64,000 nucleotides of DNA, taken from sequence record NC_010811.2, one strand, 5' to 3'. Below, piece by piece: positions 2,647 to 42,380 of this stretch. The notes below the pieces were generated by a model. That model ran no database searches and had not been told where the DNA came from. It saw only the letters and a list, made by a program, of their open reading frames with translations. Positions within the stretch are counted from its first letter, which is position 1. Each line of letters begins with the position of its first letter. A program made the position numbers and the translations under genes.

Positions 2647-3546
2647 TTACTTTGCCTTCTTCTGTTTCTGACTACTGGCGAATGCCTTCTCCCAGTAGAC
2701 GATCACTTCCTTGCGGTTGATGGACCCCTTGTACTCCTTGTCCACCACCTTGACGAACGGGTCGTGGATGGACGCCAGCTTGACCGCGGCACGGTCTGAT
2801 CCCTTTACCGTACGCTCTTCGCTACAGCCGCCGTCCGAGCCGTAGTCGAGTGGATTCACAACGAAGTTGGTGAGGATCAGATTGGGGTAGCCCAGTCGCA
2901 GCAGGTGCAGCGTCACGTTGAAGTCCTCGCGGAATTTCACTTCGTCGAATCGGATGCCGTGCTTGAGCAGTGTGCGCCGATTGTGGCCGATTGCGTGCAT
3001 GGCGCGTCCCACCATCTTGAAGTCGCCGCGCACATAGTTGTTCATCAGGCGGCTGGCGATGCACGTGTGGACTACGCCCTTGTTCACCATCTGATCCTTG
3101 ATGAAGTCCCAGCGACGCATCTTCTGCACGTCAGGGAACGGCTCCTTGAACAGGAAGGTGATGCCCTTGGCCTTTGCCGCGTCCGTCTGCACCCACTTGC
3201 CGCTCTTGGCACCCTGCCATTCGCGGTGCTCTTTGTTGCAGCGGCGGAAGAAGTACATGTCGTCGTCCAACTGGAAGACGTTGTCGGCGCGAACGTTCTC
3301 GATGATCCACTGGCGCTTCTTTGCGATACAGTCGACCGTGGGATCGTCCACCGCCCACACCAGCTCGTGCTTGTGCTTCTTGCGCAGGGCCTTCGCTTCA
3401 TCCCAATCGCTGGCCAGCAACAGCGTTCGCTCGCGCAGTTCGGCAGGCAGCTCACGCAGCGTAACCTGACGATCGACGCGCCGATGCGTTGGGATAACCA
3501 CTTGGAAGTCTTTGTCCGCCACCGGCGGGCGTCGATGTTGTGCCAT
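2647..3546 (-). CDS. TAGT-like GT-A glycosyltransferase
   Basis: VVIPTHRR...KKRQWII...FQLDDDMYF...REDFNVTLHLLRLGYPN...GGCSEERT; start at ATG 3546. Confidence 0.8.
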   Translation of the reverse strand: MAQHRRPPVADKDFQVVIPTHRRVDRQVTLRELPAELRERTLLLASDWDEAKALRKKHKHELVWAVDDPTVDCIAKKRQWIIENVRADNVFQLDDDMYFFRRCNKEHREWQGAKSGKWVQTDAAKAKGITFLFKEPFPDVQKMRRWDFIKDQMVNKGVVHTCIASRLMNNYVRGDFKMVGRAMHAIGHNRRTLLKHGIRFDEVKFREDFNVTLHLLRLGYPNLILTNFVVNPLDYGSDGGCSEERTVKGSDRAAVKLASIHDPFVKVVDKEYKGSINRKEVIVYWEKAFASSQKQKKAK

Positions 3547-5130: not shown

Positions 5131-5535
5131 CTATCTCTTCCTTCCGCTCATTTTGTGCCGTGCGCGCTGTTGCTGCTCGAAGCGCTTCCGGTCCTGCTGC
5201 TGTTGCCACTTGGTGTGGCGTCGTTCGTCCTCGTCCGACATGTCAGAAGCAGGGGGCTGACAGGGTTCAGCGTGGTCGATGAATCCAAAGCCACCGCCTG
5301 CAGTCAGCGTTGGGTCAATACGGAATATGTTGGAATGCTCCTCAGACACTGGAGTGCTGGTGGTCAACACCACTTCCCCAGTACGCGCAAAGATGCGACG
5401 GGCCTCGTCATCACTGATGTCAGGAATCATAACCAACTCCGTCTGATTGTCTTGCAGCGCTTCCTTGATCTGCTCGGTGATGTGCGCTGACAGGTCACCA
5501 AGCACTAGCACACGGCGGGGACGGTCTTCGCTCAT
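5131..5535 (-). CDS. Hypothetical protein
   Basis: ORF tightly packed in the operon. Confidence 0.7.
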   Translation of the reverse strand: MSEDRPRRVLVLGDLSAHITEQIKEALQDNQTELVMIPDISDDEARRIFARTGEVVLTTSTPVSEEHSNIFRIDPTLTAGGGFGFIDHAEPCQPPASDMSDEDERRHTKWQQQQDRKRFEQQQRARHKMSGRKR

Positions 5536-5537
5536 AA

Positions 5538-5954
5538 TCAGCCTCTTCCGGAGATGCTCAACAGTGCACCATTGCCGTTCAGTAGGTCTTGAACTTCGGC
5601 GATTTGTGCTTGAGTAAAGGTGTCCGGGACATAGGCCGTAACTTCAATCTCGGTGTTGCCCCACTGGATCACGTTGTTCTTGTCCACGCCCACTGTCACT
5701 CGACCGGGTCTCCAGTCAGTCTTTAGCGCGCCCTCGGTCACTCGAATGTACGTAGGCTTGAGGGTAGACACTACGGCCAGCGCCGTTTCATCCCACTTGC
5801 GACCGAGCAGCGACTTGGGGAAGGGAACGCACATGCGGACTTCCTTTAACGGAGCAGTCTTGTACGCATGTGACAGGGCGATGATGTCGCTGGTCAACGG
5901 ATCTTCCGCTATCGGCTCAAACCACACGCCTGAAGTGCTTCGATAGTCACGCAT
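5538..5954 (-). CDS. Putative serine-protease-inhibitor-like protein (I78/potato inhibitor I fold)
   Basis: IRVTEGALKTDWRPGRVTVGVDKNNVI resembles the T-x-D-x-R-P-x-R-V reactive-loop pattern. Confidence 0.5.
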   Translation of the reverse strand: MRDYRSTSGVWFEPIAEDPLTSDIIALSHAYKTAPLKEVRMCVPFPKSLLGRKWDETALAVVSTLKPTYIRVTEGALKTDWRPGRVTVGVDKNNVIQWGNTEIEVTAYVPDTFTQAQIAEVQDLLNGNGALLSISGRG

Positions 5955-5955
5955 G

Positions 5956-6348
5956 TTATGCTCCTGAATGCTCCGTGTAGTAGTCGATGGTTGTCAGCCA
6001 CACGTTATCACCCTTGTTTTCAGTCGGAAGCAGATTGTAAAGGGTGTAAGAACGACCTTCAAAGTCAAGCGTCACCTCCGGCCAACGCATTCGACGGCGA
6101 TCGTGCAAGTACCAATCGAACTCTACGGCGAGCTCCGTTTCGTAGTCGATAAGCACCTGAGGGATTTGGACGCGACCAGCGAACGCCATGCCGTACACCT
6201 CAGGTCTCTCTTCTTCACGGACACGGAACAAAGGACCAATGCCGAGCAGGCCAAGCGGATTGAAGCGAACGGCTACCGACTTCTCTGCCGGGCGATGCCC
6301 AACCCTCTCTAGGGGCTGCTTGACGCTAGGTGCACTAAGGAGTTTCAT
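5956..6348 (-). CDS. Hypothetical protein
   Basis: ORF packing; ATGA-type overlap. Confidence 0.65.
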   Translation of the reverse strand: MKLLSAPSVKQPLERVGHRPAEKSVAVRFNPLGLLGIGPLFRVREEERPEVYGMAFAGRVQIPQVLIDYETELAVEFDWYLHDRRRMRWPEVTLDFEGRSYTLYNLLPTENKGDNVWLTTIDYYTEHSGA

Positions 6349-17873: not shown

Positions 17874-18608
17874 TCAGGGGTGGTAGTTGAGGAGCGACCA
17901 ATAGTCGGCAGCATTGCCAATGTCCAGCACCACCTTGTTGGAGTAGCGAGTAACGTCGGCACCCAGACACTTGAGCGCGGGTCCGCCGCTGTACAACACG
18001 AGAGGCGCGTCCAATCCGATGATGTGTTCCACGGCCTCGTCCAGCTGACGCCAGTTGTTGAGCTCGAAGTAGTGCACACGCACGCCCAGCACATCACGGC
18101 AGCGAATCTGGAGTGCGTCGGCCAAGCCGCGTGACGCGTGCAGGAAGATGAGGGACCCCGCCGTCTTGTACAGTTCGGCCTGCGCCTGCTGCGTCCACAC
18201 GTTGACGAAGAAGTTGTCAACGTACTGCTCGCGCGGACGGAACAGGTCATGAACGCTGTAGTACGGCTGCGTGATGCCCGAGATGTTGGGCGCGAAATAG
18301 TCGCTGTCGTTACCAGCGGACAACAGGCGGCGATGGAGTTCGCCGTAGGTGATGCCTTCGATGCCCATGCGCTTGCGCCACGCTTCGTCGTAGTCAGAGA
18401 CCATGGAGTCTGCGGCACGCCACCGTTTAGAGGCATCGGCACAGGATTCCATCAACTGACGTTCACCATCGCCCATGCGAGCGACGCTCAGTGATCGGTT
18501 GTTGATCAGCGCGTCACCCACCAGATAGTAGAAGGCCCATGCACTCATGGTGCGATTGGCAATGTCGACGGCACGTTCAGACAGCGAGGATAGGACCATT
18601 CCGGACAT
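17874..18608 (-). CDS. GT-D fold glycosyltransferase-like protein
   Basis: SLSVARMGDGE...LVLYSGGP...VLDIGNAAD motifs of the GT-D (DUF1792-like) family. Confidence 0.65.
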   Translation of the reverse strand: MSGMVLSSLSERAVDIANRTMSAWAFYYLVGDALINNRSLSVARMGDGERQLMESCADASKRWRAADSMVSDYDEAWRKRMGIEGITYGELHRRLLSAGNDSDYFAPNISGITQPYYSVHDLFRPREQYVDNFFVNVWTQQAQAELYKTAGSLIFLHASRGLADALQIRCRDVLGVRVHYFELNNWRQLDEAVEHIIGLDAPLVLYSGGPALKCLGADVTRYSNKVVLDIGNAADYWSLLNYHP

Positions 18609-18625
18609 GTTGATGCTCCTTAGTC

Positions 18626-18656
18626 AAAAAGAAAGGGGACCCAATGAGGGTCCCCT
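18626..18656 (-). terminator. Rho-independent terminator
   Basis: AGGGGACCC/GGGTCCCCT stem followed by TTTCTTTTT on the - strand. Confidence 0.8.
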
Positions 18657-18657
18657 G

Positions 18658-18903
18658 TTATGCGCGTGACTGCAGTTCGAGGACAGTGTCGTCGTCTGCA
18701 AACTGATCGAAGTAATGGTACTCAGGGCACCGAAGTGAGTAATGCCCGCCGCAGGAATCACACGCGGCTTCGCAGATGCGCCAGTCTTCCACAGGGTGGA
18801 ACTTGTCGCATTCTGGACATTTCAGATCGTGCTCGGTGAGTGTCGGTGGACCATCCAGTAATGGACCGTGATCCTGAATGAAATCGTACACGGTAATGGT
18901 CAT
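18658..18903 (-). CDS. Small Zn-ribbon protein
   Basis: CPEC...CDSCGGH...CPEYH; ATG 18903. Confidence 0.65.
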   Translation of the reverse strand: MTITVYDFIQDHGPLLDGPPTLTEHDLKCPECDKFHPVEDWRICEAACDSCGGHYSLRCPEYHYFDQFADDDTVLELQSRA

Positions 18904-18919
18904 AGACACCTCGGTGTTA

Positions 18920-19038
18920 TGGAGTCGCGCCCCGAATCGAACGGGATGGGATGTAGCTGAATTCAACCAGACCAACGTGCGGCCGCACGCCTACACCTCT
19001 TATGTATTCATACCAGCAGCCTACTGGACTCACGCGAC
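18920..19038 (-). ncRNA. 119-nt tRNA-like RNA with expanded D region and branched insert replacing the anticodon loop
   Basis: GTCGCGT/GCGCGAC acceptor stem, CCCG-TTCGATT-CGGG T arm, encoded T-CCA; starts 7 nt after the tRNA-Gly CCA. Confidence 0.7.
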
Positions 19039-19045
19039 AAAGACT

Positions 19046-19121
19046 TGGAGCGGGCGACGAGACTCGAACTCGCGACATCTTGCTTGGAAGGCAAGAACTC
19101 TACCAACTGAGCTACGCCCGC
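19046..19121 (-). tRNA. trnG: tRNA-Gly(TCC)
   Basis: GCGGGCGTAGCTCAGTTGGTAGAGTTCTTGCCTTCCAAGCAAGATGTCGCGAGTTCGAGTCTCGTCGCCCGCTCCA; canonical 76-nt cloverleaf with CCA. Confidence 0.95.
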
Positions 19122-19134
19122 AGAAACTGAAACA

Positions 19135-19204
19135 ACTCCCTTAGTGGGTTCGAACCACTGCCTGCCCCCGTCGGGACCGCTCTACCACTCTAAGCTAAAG
19201 GGAA
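19135..19204 (-). ncRNA. tRNA-like RNA with 4-nt anticodon loop (pseudo-tRNA)
   Basis: TTCCCTT/AAGGGAG acceptor, GCTT/GAGC D arm, GTCCC-GACG-GGGGC arm, AGTGG-TTCGAAC-CCACT T arm; no CCA. Confidence 0.7.
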
Positions 19205-19273
19205 TTGAGTTTGCTCACCAGCATGGAGAAGGTGCGCACAGTGCACCCCCTTGGTCCATACACGGCTTGCAGA

Positions 19274-19351
19274 TGGTCCGAGTGAGAGGATTCGAACCTC
19301 CGACCCCCTGATCCCAAATCAGGTGCGCTAACCAGACTGCGCTACACTCGG
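19274..19351 (-). tRNA. trnP: tRNA-Pro(TGG)
   Basis: CCGAGTG/CACTCGG acceptor, CCTGA-TT-TGG-GA-TCAGG anticodon arm, encoded CCA. Confidence 0.95.
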
Positions 19352-19358
19352 TAAACAG

Positions 19359-19745
19359 TTAGACCGCCAACGACGATCTATGAAAAGCGATGTGCCTGAA
19401 CACTGGCAACTCTAGCGTCGGCGGGTTGATGGGTAGTCCCCAAGCTTCCAGCAGTGGATGAAACGTTGAGTCGATCCAGCCTTCGGCAACCACAGAATCG
19501 GAATTTGTGGACAGCGTAGGTAGCGGGCGCGCAGTTCGTCTGTAGTAGACAGACTTATCGACAGCGCCACGCTCATGGGGCAAGCGTTCAACCAAGTTGA
19601 GTTCTACGCCTAGTCGCAGCGCCAAACGCACTTGGTACACGTTGGACCCAAGCATGGACACTAGGTCCAATGCCGCGACCTTTTCAAATTGCTCAGCCGC
19701 CTTCAGAATCTCGATCTGCTGGCGAGTCAGGGTAATCTCTGGCAT
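19359..19745 (-). CDS. Putative winged-HTH protein
   Basis: LTRQQIEIL...LDLVSMLGSNVYQVRLALRLGVELNLVER pattern. Confidence 0.55.
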   Translation of the reverse strand: MPEITLTRQQIEILKAAEQFEKVAALDLVSMLGSNVYQVRLALRLGVELNLVERLPHERGAVDKSVYYRRTARPLPTLSTNSDSVVAEGWIDSTFHPLLEAWGLPINPPTLELPVFRHIAFHRSSLAV

Positions 19746-21511: not shown

Positions 21512-21543
21512 GTGAACCTCGAGGGTTAAACAGATTTGCTTTC

Positions 21544-21669
21544 TGGGCGACCGGAAGGAATCGAACCTCCGTCTGCAGGTACCAATCTCAGCATTCGATC
21601 CGGCCTGTTAAGGTTCCCGCGTGTCTAGCGCCGAGATGCACTGCAATTCTGCCACTGAACTACGATCGC
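21544..21669 (-). ncRNA. 126-nt tRNA-like RNA with a 62-nt structured segment in place of the anticodon loop
   Basis: GCGATCG/CGGTCGC acceptor, GTTC-AGTGGCA-GAAT D arm, TGCAG/CTGCA stem, GGAGG-TTCGATT-CCTTC T arm. Confidence 0.8.
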
Positions 21670-21706
21670 GTTGATGCTTTCTGGGCAGCCCTCGGCAGAA
21701 GGCGTC

Positions 21707-40581: not shown

Positions 40582-40899
40582 ATGTCCCTACACCAATCGC
40601 ACCCGCACCTGAACTACGCTCTTGAGGTGTACATCTCAAAGCATCAGTACATCGCATCGCCTCTGCAAGTCGTGAGCTACCTCACTGCGCCGACTTTCAA
40701 GGCGGATCTCGACGAAATGGGCGTAGATCCGGCACAAGCCGGTGCGCAAGCCGACACGTGGCTCAGTGCACCACTGAACATGGCCCTCTTCCTGAAAGAA
40801 GTGATCGAGGAAAACGAGCCGTCGGTACTCGGCGCTGAACATCACACTGGAGCCGAGGCGCTGGCCGCTCTGCTCTGGGTCGCAGACAATCTCGCGTAA
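40582..40899 (+). CDS. Early hypothetical protein
   Basis: First gene after the early promoter. Confidence 0.75.
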   Translation: MSLHQSHPHLNYALEVYISKHQYIASPLQVVSYLTAPTFKADLDEMGVDPAQAGAQADTWLSAPLNMALFLKEVIEENEPSVLGAEHHTGAEALAALLWVADNLA

Positions 40900-40909
40900 G
40901 GGGTTCAAC

Positions 40910-41608
40910 ATGTCCAACGTCTACACCGCAGACTTCGGCGCAACCAAGTTCCAGACCACGCGTCGTGGGGTCAACGCCACGTCGCCCATCCTCAAGAATG
41001 GCGTCAAGGTCGCCACGCTCCACGATGTGGCCGAGCGCATCTCCACCGACGTGGTGTTCGTCAACACCCAGGAGCGCTTTGCCTTCTTGGAGGCCGCTCA
41101 GTCGCACGGGTTCACGGGGTCCGAGCACTTCGCCATCTCCGAGTTCGCTCGCCATCTGCTGGATAAGGCGTCCAACGCTTTCCTGGAGGCTGTCGAGCCA
41201 TCCAAGCCCAAGCGCAAGGCCAAGCCGTTGCCCGCTCCTACGCCCGAGCCACAACGCACAGTTCCAGAAGCGGGCGCGGACTTCATCCGCGAAGCGTTCG
41301 GCATCGAAACGCAGTTCGAGCGGCAAGCGTACCAACCCAAGCGCAAGCGCCTGCTCTTCTCGTCGTCGGGCAAGGTTCCATCGTTTCCTGAGTTGGAACG
41401 CATCTGTCGCCAGTTCACTGCGCAGCGCTGCCAAAACGTCAACACGTCGGTCTTCATCAGCGAAACGCCAGTGTTCCACTCCAGTACGTGGAGCATTCGC
41501 GAGCTGACTGTATCGTTCGATGGGCACCGAGTAGTGTTCACCAAGTACCACAACGCTACTGACCTGCACATCGAGCTCATCGATCGCAGCGCTGTCTACG
41601 AGGAGTAA
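40910..41608 (+). CDS. Early hypothetical protein
   Basis: ORF packing. Confidence 0.75.
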   Translation: MSNVYTADFGATKFQTTRRGVNATSPILKNGVKVATLHDVAERISTDVVFVNTQERFAFLEAAQSHGFTGSEHFAISEFARHLLDKASNAFLEAVEPSKPKRKAKPLPAPTPEPQRTVPEAGADFIREAFGIETQFERQAYQPKRKRLLFSSSGKVPSFPELERICRQFTAQRCQNVNTSVFISETPVFHSSTWSIRELTVSFDGHRVVFTKYHNATDLHIELIDRSAVYEE

Positions 41609-41611
41609 ATC

Positions 41612-42040
41612 ATGGAAAAGTTCTTCGCAGAGACAGTCGTTACCCATGAAGGATTCGGGCGTGGGGTTGTTCTCGCAGAGACGGCGCCCGACGTGTACGA
41701 GGTGCGATTCGATCGGGTCATCGACCCTTTCGTCACCGATTACGAATGCTCTCGTACTCATACGGTGAGCGCCGAGCATCTAGAGCGTGTGGTCCTCACG
41801 TTGGCCGACTTTAAGCCCGGCGACAAGCTGGAATTCACCCAGCGCTTCCGTGTCGGCGACAAGACCGTGACCGAGGTGCGGACCGCTGTTGTCACCCTCA
41901 TCAACTGGGAAGGTAACGGCCTCGTGTCGTACACAGGTCGCGTTCAAGAAGGCATGATGCGGACGGGCTCCGGCGCGTTCGACCCGGCAGCGGTGGGCAC
42001 CAAGCCGTTCGGTTTCCACTGCGCAGTGCGTAAGGTCTAA
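41612..42040 (+). CDS. Hypothetical protein (SH3-like segments)
   Basis: VTHEGFGRGVV; FKPGDKLEF. Confidence 0.7.
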   Translation: MEKFFAETVVTHEGFGRGVVLAETAPDVYEVRFDRVIDPFVTDYECSRTHTVSAEHLERVVLTLADFKPGDKLEFTQRFRVGDKTVTEVRTAVVTLINWEGNGLVSYTGRVQEGMMRTGSGAFDPAAVGTKPFGFHCAVRKV

Positions 42041-42050
42041 GGAGTGGGTC

Positions 42051-42380
42051 ATGAAGTTCGTCAACAGCAAGAAGGTCAAGGACCATGCGTACGACCTGTA
42101 TCTGGTCCGTCAGCAGAAGCGTGAGCTCGCTGAGAAGATGCGCGAGTTGGAAGCGCAAGAGCAGGCGTTGTCCGCGTTTCTGCGCGCAAAGCGCGCCGAC
42201 GAGGACTTCCAGTTTGCAGATCCCGAAGGCTATCTGATGGAAACGGATTTCGTGCCGGGGTCGCGTATGGATGTGAACGACGCGCAGGTCCGCCGAGACT
42301 ACGCCAAGATGGGTAAGAAGGTGCCCATGAAGAAGAGCGAGTGGGTCACGGTCAAAGTCCGCTACATCCTGGAGAAGTAA
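42051..42380 (+). CDS. Hypothetical coiled-coil protein
   Basis: AAGGAG SD. Confidence 0.75.
   Translation: MKFVNSKKVKDHAYDLYLVRQQKRELAEKMRELEAQEQALSAFLRAKRADEDFQFADPEGYLMETDFVPGSRMDVNDAQVRRDYAKMGKKVPMKKSEWVTVKVRYILEK

Follow-up and report, generated by a model that had tools for sequence, protein, structure and literature searches.

A 119-nt tRNA-derived gene with a tRNA top half and a non-tRNA middle at the end of the phage phiRSL1 tRNA array

Introduction

The tRNA clusters of phages are usually read as sources of codon-usage helpers or of spares against host anticodon nucleases. The T4 cluster also specifies two RNAs that are not tRNAs, RNAC (species 1, 139 nt) and RNAD (species 2, 119 nt), whose roles are unknown (PMC3014915; PMC9697503). 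Both genes follow tRNA-Arg at the 3' end of the cluster, 1–6 nt from the neighbouring gene, and Rfam has no family for either RNA. In the T4 record (L017, 1409–1547, minus strand), rnaC specifies a canonical T arm (CCGGG UUCGAAU CCCGG) and an acceptor-like closing helix in which five of seven pairs form, and its fold is strongly significant (z −4.6, against −1.35 for the phiRSL1 element described here).

Ralstonia is a plant pathogen and the host of the giant phage phiRSL1. This phage is the sole member of the genus Mieseafarmvirus (record taxonomy line; PMC8504454), and two of its genes that flank the locus studied here, ORF259 and ORF260, have no homologue in any other deposited phage. We analysed a window of 64,000 nt, positions 167256–231255 of the genome of this Ralstonia jumbo phage (NC_010811, 231,255 bp), and give window coordinates throughout unless another sequence is named. 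In blastn, 18600–19400 aligns to this genome with 100% identity. On its minus strand, at 18920–19038, lies a 119-nt element that is an unannotated tRNA-derived gene: both of its ends fold as the top half of a tRNA, and its middle is not that of a tRNA. The RNA is the reverse complement of 18920–19038 and is numbered from p1 (19038) to p119 (18920), so that position p corresponds to window coordinate 19039 − p.

Results

A tRNA-like frame in the phiRSL1 array

The acceptor stem of the element pairs a 5' strand GUCGCGU (p1–7, 19032–19038, minus strand) with a 3' strand GCGCGAC (p109–115, 18924–18930), forming six Watson–Crick pairs and U7–G109 at ensemble probabilities of 0.85–1.0. The T arm (18931–18945) has the stem strands CCCG (p94–97) and CGGG (p105–108) around the loop UUCGAUU, forms with an ensemble probability of 0.97 and is canonical at every universal position (G53–C61, U54, U55, C56, R57 and A58). 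Direct reading of 18920–18923 gives a discriminator, U116, and an encoded CCA (p117–119); CCA is also encoded in both intact tRNAs of the phage. Acceptor and T arm thus occupy nearly the whole predicted ensemble, with probabilities near 1, and stack over 11 bp (7/4 or 6/5), compared with 12 bp in a normal tRNA. These features agree with the original prediction, which had described a 7-bp acceptor, an encoded U-CCA and a 4-bp T stem and had placed the element, at the coordinates given above, 7 nt behind tRNA-Gly in the same orientation.

To scan both strands of the 231-kb genome, we defined the frame as a T stem of 4–5 bp with a TTCRANN loop, a 7-bp acceptor within 160 nt and a terminal NCCA. 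The scan returned three matches, namely tRNA-Pro, tRNA-Gly and the 119-nt element, and ten shuffled genomes returned none; the tRNA-like frame of the element is therefore real and beyond chance. No second copy of the element occurs elsewhere in phiRSL1. The anatomy, uniqueness and context of the element are in this sense matters of observation.

Upstream on the same strand lie an intact tRNA-Pro(UGG) (19274–19351; ARAGORN and Rfam), a tRNA-shaped gene whose anticodon loop has collapsed (19134–19205; 'tRNA-???' in ARAGORN, and direct reading) and an intact tRNA-Gly(UCC) (19046–19121; ARAGORN, and 69.7 bits in Rfam); the intact neighbours score 68–70 bits on the Rfam tRNA model. The element begins 7 nt 3' of the CCA of tRNA-Gly (19046), an array-like spacing, and its own 3' end lies 16 nt before the ATG (18903) of ORF260, with a GAGG ribosome-binding site between. 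ORF260 (18658–18903, minus strand) encodes an 81-residue, cysteine-rich orphan protein for which a search of protein families returned none, and its true start is probably the ATG at 18903, behind the GAGG. There is no terminator between tRNA-Pro and ORF260, and a strong intrinsic one, a 9-bp GC-rich stem with a U tract and weak Rfam terminator-like matches (18634–18656, minus strand), stands directly 3' of ORF260 and closes the unit. The element is thus the last RNA gene of this unit.

GenBank starts ORF260 at a TTG (18975), 72 nt upstream of the ATG, which creates a 56-nt overlap with the element, and places ORF261 (18957–19130, plus strand) antisense over tRNA-Gly. The added ORF260 segment (18904–18975, minus strand) and ORF261 are probably mis-annotations over RNA genes.

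This arrangement might suggest that the element acts in cis, its fold recruiting RNase P so as to free the trailer of tRNA-Gly and give the ORF260 message a defined, structured 5' region, with the excised RNA as a by-product. The short distances to tRNA-Gly and to the ORF260 start, the GAGG between and the single terminator after ORF260 all suit such a module, and RNase P is known to separate polycistronic tRNA transcripts in Escherichia coli. A minimal hairpin or a normal tRNA would suffice for this purpose, however, leaving the 85-nt middle unexplained; moreover, ORF260 belongs to no family and the order tRNA-Gly, element, ORF260 is not conserved in related phages. We regard a purely cis-acting role as unlikely.

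The element is one of several unusual genes. Between 18.6 and 22.4 kb, the non-coding space is accounted for almost wholly by the two tRNAs together with five tRNA-shaped genes that are not standard. Each of these five keeps the top half and has an altered anticodon region, and among these five non-decoding genes the 119-nt element alone has a full CCA end.

The middle of the element

On thermodynamic prediction, the fold is established for the top half of the element only. The original prediction had placed a two-hairpin D region and a branched anticodon domain between the ends, and neither found thermodynamic backing. A D-like hairpin, CCAG / UAGGCUG / CUGG (p12–26, 19013–19027, minus strand), may form, with an ensemble probability of 0.45 against 0.53 for the competing pairing of p12–15 with p64–67, and the second hairpin proposed for this region, UAUG/CAUA, reaches 0.09. 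In the proposed branched domain the words are indeed complementary, but the ensemble probabilities are 0.05 for the enclosing 7-bp helix, 0.35 for the palindrome hairpin and 0.04 for CUGG/UCAG, compared with 0.85–0.93 for the competing hairpins p33–37/43–47 and p70–75/80–85. The complete proposed structure has a predicted energy of −37.0 kcal/mol, about 6 kcal/mol above the optimum of −42.9 kcal/mol, and dinucleotide shuffles average −38.6 kcal/mol (z −1.35 for the element). There are 369 suboptimal folds within 3 kcal/mol. The middle domain (p27–92, 18947–19012, minus strand), which contains the 14-nt palindrome CGUGCGGCCGCACG, is not tRNA-like, and the middle taken alone (p8–92, p27–89 or p42–89) is as stable as its shuffles, with z values of −0.4 to −1.1. 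Nor does direct reading bear out the suggested UGA-reading register A-U-UCA-G-C, which has no closing stem: the five bases on either side form one pair.

Self-alignment reveals an imperfect direct repeat, CUGGU(A)UGAAU, that brackets the extra sequence. Its first copy, CUGGUAUGAAU, spans p23–33 (19006–19016, minus strand) and borders the 45-nt insert that ARAGORN proposes under relaxed settings (see below); the second, CUGGUUGAAU, spans p69–78 (18961–18970, minus strand). With p about 0.09 (28 of 300 shuffles), the repeat is not significant alone.

An inner site (18917–18999, minus strand) carries AAGAGGUG, followed 5 nt on by a GUG and an open frame of 23 codons whose UAA comes directly after the CCA. 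Its GAGGUGU heptamer also serves as the ribosome-binding site of ORF260. The heptamer is as frequent across the genome as expected, so the inner frame is probably a chance occurrence.

Comparison with known RNA classes

Rfam 15 was searched with the whole window at gathering scores, and with 3.4 kb and 146 nt at E ≤ 10; none of these searches gave a tRNA, tRNA-Sec, tmRNA, Y RNA, ribozyme or intron match on the element. Its sole match, on the opposite strand at 15 bits, is meaningless. On the tRNA covariance model (RF00005), the element does not reach the 29-bit threshold and has no match at E ≤ 10, and the tRNA-Sec and tmRNA models, the Infernal comparison put forward with the original prediction, gave no match even at that level. 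By the usual anatomy of a tRNA, acceptor, T arm and CCA are present, except that the T stem has 4 bp when the acceptor is counted as 7 bp; default ARAGORN finds neither a canonical D arm nor, on a 5-bp stem, a closed anticodon loop of 7 nt. That program, run for tRNA and tmRNA, does not call the element by default, nor when inserts are allowed at the default threshold.

A chargeable UGA reader resembling tRNA-Sec or a suppressor, or a rescue RNA resembling tmRNA, can be considered because the encoded CCA and the acceptor/T helix are intact. U73 is the major determinant for cysteine charging of acceptor helices, and the discriminator of the element is likewise a U. Against these readings stand the negative Rfam results for tRNA-Sec (RF01852), tRNA and tmRNA at E ≤ 10, stems of 7/4 rather than 8/5, and a UCA (p79–81) that lies outside any closed loop. 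Position 3:70 is C–G, so there is no alanine identity, and with no ARAGORN tmRNA call, resume codon or tag frame the original statement that the element does not resemble tmRNA is upheld. Membership in the tRNA-Sec and tmRNA classes is already contradicted, and we consider this whole group of readings very improbable.

Other candidate classes were rejected as well. Allo-tRNAs require stems of 8/4 or 9/3 and a long variable arm, and direct reading of the element gives 7/4 or 6/5. A group I intron would need a core of about 200 nt or more, as opposed to an insert of 45 nt, and neither Intron_gpI nor any ribozyme matches at E ≤ 10. For an archaeal-type intron, the phage lacks PF01974 and the junctions p27/28 and p72/73 do not allow a bulge-helix-bulge, although RtcB is present. 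Finally, a Y RNA of the YrlA type finds neither a TROVE protein in the phage genome nor a Y RNA match in Rfam.

Insert-bearing tRNA-shaped genes and RtcB

ARAGORN does call the element once inserts are allowed and the threshold is lowered to 90%: it then proposes a tRNA(UGA) of 74 nt, interrupted after p27, between positions 32 and 33, by a 45-nt insert. In this parse, the only one with anything resembling an anticodon, there is an anticodon stem at p22–26/79–83 with the loop U|UUGAAU, a D stem of 3 bp, a D loop of 5 nt without a free G18 G19, and a variable loop of 9 nt. Its UGA anticodon would read the serine codon UCA, not a stop. Most of what ARAGORN calls in this region at 90% is plainly wrong, and control runs in which real tRNA bodies were given random-sequence loops never failed to produce some parse. 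The UGA parse is a lead and not a finding.

Codon usage is of interest in this respect. Relative to host coding sequence, represented by 50 kb of the R. solanacearum CFBP2957 megaplasmid (L018), that of phiRSL1 as a whole is enriched 7.2-fold in ACU, 5.2-fold in UCA, 5.0-fold in CCU and 4.8-fold in CCA, which are among the highest values, and 2.1-fold in GGA. The intact tRNA-Pro(UGG) reads CCA and the intact tRNA-Gly(UCC) reads GGA. Together, the relaxed parse and the enrichment of UCA suggest descent from a phage tRNA for UCA, yet the body has no long variable arm.

ARAGORN identifies seven insert-bearing tRNA-shaped genes, with inserts of 11–85 nt, in phiRSL1 and related phage contigs. In phiRSL1 these are the 119-nt element and a 124-nt element (21546–21669, minus strand); two more lie in G001 (L007, reverse complement; 3027–3188 and 5302–5389), one in L019 (7668–7797) and two in L022 (3638–3813 and 4757–4880). 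Counting the 119-nt element, the insert falls at 32/33 in five of the seven and at 31/32 and 33/34 in one each, whereas 14% of ARAGORN parses fall at 32/33 in random-loop controls (n = 800). CCA is encoded in several of these genes and absent from some. Like the 119-nt element, the other insert-bearing or loop-less genes have intact acceptor and T arms and an altered anticodon region, lie inside tRNA arrays and, in ARAGORN, carry their inserts on the 5' side of the anticodon loop; unlike it, they have canonical D arms, some lack CCA, and they share no sequence with it.

These genes raise the alternative that the element is a split tRNA(UGA) gene, from whose transcript an unknown endonuclease cuts a 45-nt non-group-I insert at 32/33 and phage RtcB joins the halves. 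More broadly, RSL1-like phages would possess a class of tRNA genes with RtcB-spliced inserts of 11–85 nt, almost always at 32/33, to which the element would belong. The stem found by the relaxed parse, the recurrence of 32/33 and the high phage enrichment of UCA and ACU, the codons assigned to the 119-nt and 124-nt elements, all favour this alternative; CCA, which an intact tRNA reads, is similarly enriched, and GGA 2.1-fold. The phage also encodes a full-length RtcB (ORF082; genome positions 40868–42121, plus strand; 420 bits), annotated as a tRNA splicing ligase; neither a Ro/TROVE protein nor a CCA-adding enzyme was found in its genome. Phage RtcB is usually explained by the repair of tRNAs cut by host nucleases, and its presence keeps the intron reading alive without specifically supporting it.

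Several observations argue in the opposite direction. First, the call appears only below the default threshold of ARAGORN, a program that always parses a good body with a random loop. Second, the spliced product would have the 3-bp D stem, the 5-nt D loop without G18 G19 and the 9-nt variable loop of the relaxed parse, and UGA is a serine anticodon, yet there is no long arm. Third, a 62-nt insert does not keep the 124-nt neighbour from scoring 41 bits on the Rfam tRNA model, and the 119-nt element stays below the reporting level of that model. Fourth, no EndA-type endonuclease was found in the phiRSL1 genome, the junctions form no bulge-helix-bulge, and the insert is far below group I size and matches no Rfam ribozyme. 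Finally, A34 is unnatural in bacteria, and its presence at the start of three of the seven nominal anticodons argues against real decoding. We therefore consider it improbable that the element is a split tRNA gene, and give the proposed class of RtcB-spliced genes equally little credence.

The 12-nt direct repeat GCCCAGAAAGCA occurs on both sides of the 124-nt element (21670–21690 and 21535–21550, minus strand). L019, L020 and L022 have a similar conserved motif, CCCAGAAGAAAG, shortly before the end of their non-coding gap (see below), and the insert of L022 4757–4880 contains a T-arm-like hairpin, CCCGG UUCGAGU CCGGG.

Related phages and the history of the array

Searches for relatives of the element itself were negative. 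Phage and plasmid sequences searched with blastn yielded phiRSL1 itself and otherwise chance matches only; one match, on the R. solanacearum megaplasmid, is not a tRNA. Neither nhmmer against related phage contigs nor a single-sequence covariance model of the originally predicted structure against 287 kb of these contigs found a homologue. A 22-nt word from the T arm and acceptor retrieved, from 185,579 species genomes, only three Bradyrhizobium hairpins that are not tRNAs, and the palindrome word had no match in IMG/VR and 27 in JGI metagenomes, none extending past the word. A 163-nt element of G001 was considered as a relative, and alignment shows no real similarity. When the 'spliced' form was aligned globally to 77 tRNAs of phiRSL1 and its relatives, no isotype emerged clearly as its ancestor.

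By contrast with the element, the neighbouring ORF259, which encodes a GT-D-like protein, has homologues, 43–60% identical to it, on phage contigs from metagenomes that share the gene order of phiRSL1. These contigs carry 8–21 standard tRNAs on the same strand, upstream of the GT-D-like gene, as opposed to two in phiRSL1, whose tRNA set is therefore reduced. On L010, the next contig after the two whose ORF259 homologues are 60% identical, no tRNA-like RNA lies upstream.

A shrinking array makes the main rival to a functional RNA easy to state: the element could be the dead remnant of what was once a phage tRNA, probably with a UGA anticodon, and lost its function through an insertion or duplication in the anticodon loop and decay of the D arm. 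The larger arrays of the relatives fit this history, as does plain debris within them, such as the 5' half of a tRNA-Pro in L014. It would also account for a middle no more structured than its shuffles, for the CUGGU(A)UGAAU repeat around the extra sequence, as left by duplication or insertion, and for the absence of a homologue in any search; a residual UGA would read UCA, the 5.2-fold enriched codon, as expected of a once-useful tRNA. Neutral decay, however, should not leave the ends so clean: all 11 stacked pairs, the universal T-arm bases, the discriminator and the CCA have stayed intact on either side of 85 nt that cannot be recognised. In addition, the repeat is not significant by itself, and the insert is not a mobile element repeated in the phage, which contains no second copy of it. 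A relic is a possibility that we take seriously, though we do not think it the likelier account.

The related contigs contain other features of note. In L014, at about 5860–5994, a truncated 5' half of a tRNA-Pro-like gene, plain array debris, directly precedes an 86-nt tRNA-Pro(UGG) with an extended variable region. L009 (reverse complement, 2913–3316) has an ARAGORN-predicted tmRNA (tag ATINVVDFDRSFVPSFAEVA) within its tRNA array. Between a DUF7873 gene and the GT-D-like gene, the relatives have 600–900 nt without called genes that end in a terminator (L019 9080–10001, L020 5547–6413, L022 9248–10001, L013 9263–10001 and L014 9381–10001; 21953–22436 in our window). This gap holds a conserved, T-loop-bearing and rearranged tRNA-like sequence, in the order T arm, 3' acceptor and CCA, then 5' acceptor and D arm.

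Discussion

Having neither a closed anticodon loop of 7 nt nor a canonical D arm or elbow, the element is unable to decode; the negative results with the Rfam tRNA, tRNA-Sec and tmRNA models and with default ARAGORN likewise mean that it is not a decoder. The explanation we prefer, with roughly even confidence, is a processed tRNA look-alike that does not decode and whose action, if it has any, would be exerted through the acceptor/T/CCA half.

We infer transcription, processing and any role of the element from its sequence and setting. A single transcript would contain tRNA-Pro, the loop-less tRNA look-alike, tRNA-Gly, the element and ORF260, and would end at the terminator (18634–18656). A U at −1, a G at +1, an 11-bp acceptor/T stack and UCCA are features of RNase P substrates. 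RNase P could thus cleave before G1 (19038), and trimming of the 3' end to the encoded CCA, as in the neighbouring tRNAs, would yield a stable RNA of about 119 nt. Excision of the element would also free the 3' trailer of tRNA-Gly and the ORF260 message. Most plausibly, the top half would then pass for a substrate with proteins that bind the acceptor/T helix and CCA, for example host tRNA-processing enzymes or toxins that target tRNA ends. Charging of the element, or mimicry of a CCA end by it, may be possible.

The argument for function is the contrast between spared ends and an unrecognisable middle, together with the five such genes that fill the local non-coding space. Ascertainment detracts from the observation that every such gene keeps its top half, as the scans find only intact top halves, and the argument is weakened also by the absence of any homologue. 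Against a look-alike, moreover, are a middle no more structured than shuffled sequence, a stack of 11 rather than 12 bp and the lack of a family for ORF260.

There are several implications. First, phiRSL1 has only two working tRNAs as against five tRNA-shaped genes unable to decode; if these RNAs are made and kept, they would point to a second use of the tRNA shape by phages, in which look-alikes could occupy or distract proteins that bind the acceptor/T helix or the CCA end, including processing enzymes and defence toxins that modify tRNA ends. Second, if the element is a relic only, it documents the decay of a large ancestral tRNA array. Third, should the RtcB-splicing reading be true after all, RSL1-like phages would offer the first example among bacterial viruses of tRNA splicing that depends on proteins. 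Finally, the GenBank annotation is corrected where ORF260 and ORF261 overlap RNA genes.

Among described systems, bacterial tRNA genes with group I introns and archaeal genes with bulge-helix-bulge introns share with the element extra sequence in the anticodon loop; the element differs in having 45 nt of it and no Intron_gpI, bulge-helix-bulge or EndA (10.1101/2020.01.27.920355). The tRNA-like domain of tmRNA similarly combines acceptor, T arm and CCA without an anticodon arm, and at only 119 nt the element has no G3–U70, pseudoknots or tag frame. Bacterial RtcB is found in rsr-yrlA-rtcBA operons, and the non-coding bacterial Y RNA (YrlA) imitates, as the element does, a tRNA top half; in contrast to YrlA, the element ends in CCA and has no Ro-binding stem, and the phage encodes no Ro/TROVE protein.

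RNAC and RNAD of T4 resemble the element in kind, as non-tRNA RNAs with tRNA-like termini at the end of a cluster, and not by homology, since they share no sequence similarity with it. All three are non-decoders of similar size at the distal end of a phage tRNA cluster, and RNAC, like the element, has a canonical T arm and joins its 5' and 3' ends in an acceptor-like helix. The middle of RNAC is strongly structured and that of the element less so, whereas the annotated ends of RNAC lack CCA and close with five of seven pairs, so that the element, with its CCA and perfect stem, is the more tRNA-like of the two. If the phiRSL1 RNAs are made and kept, they could help to explain RNAC and RNAD, a puzzle of about fifty years' standing.
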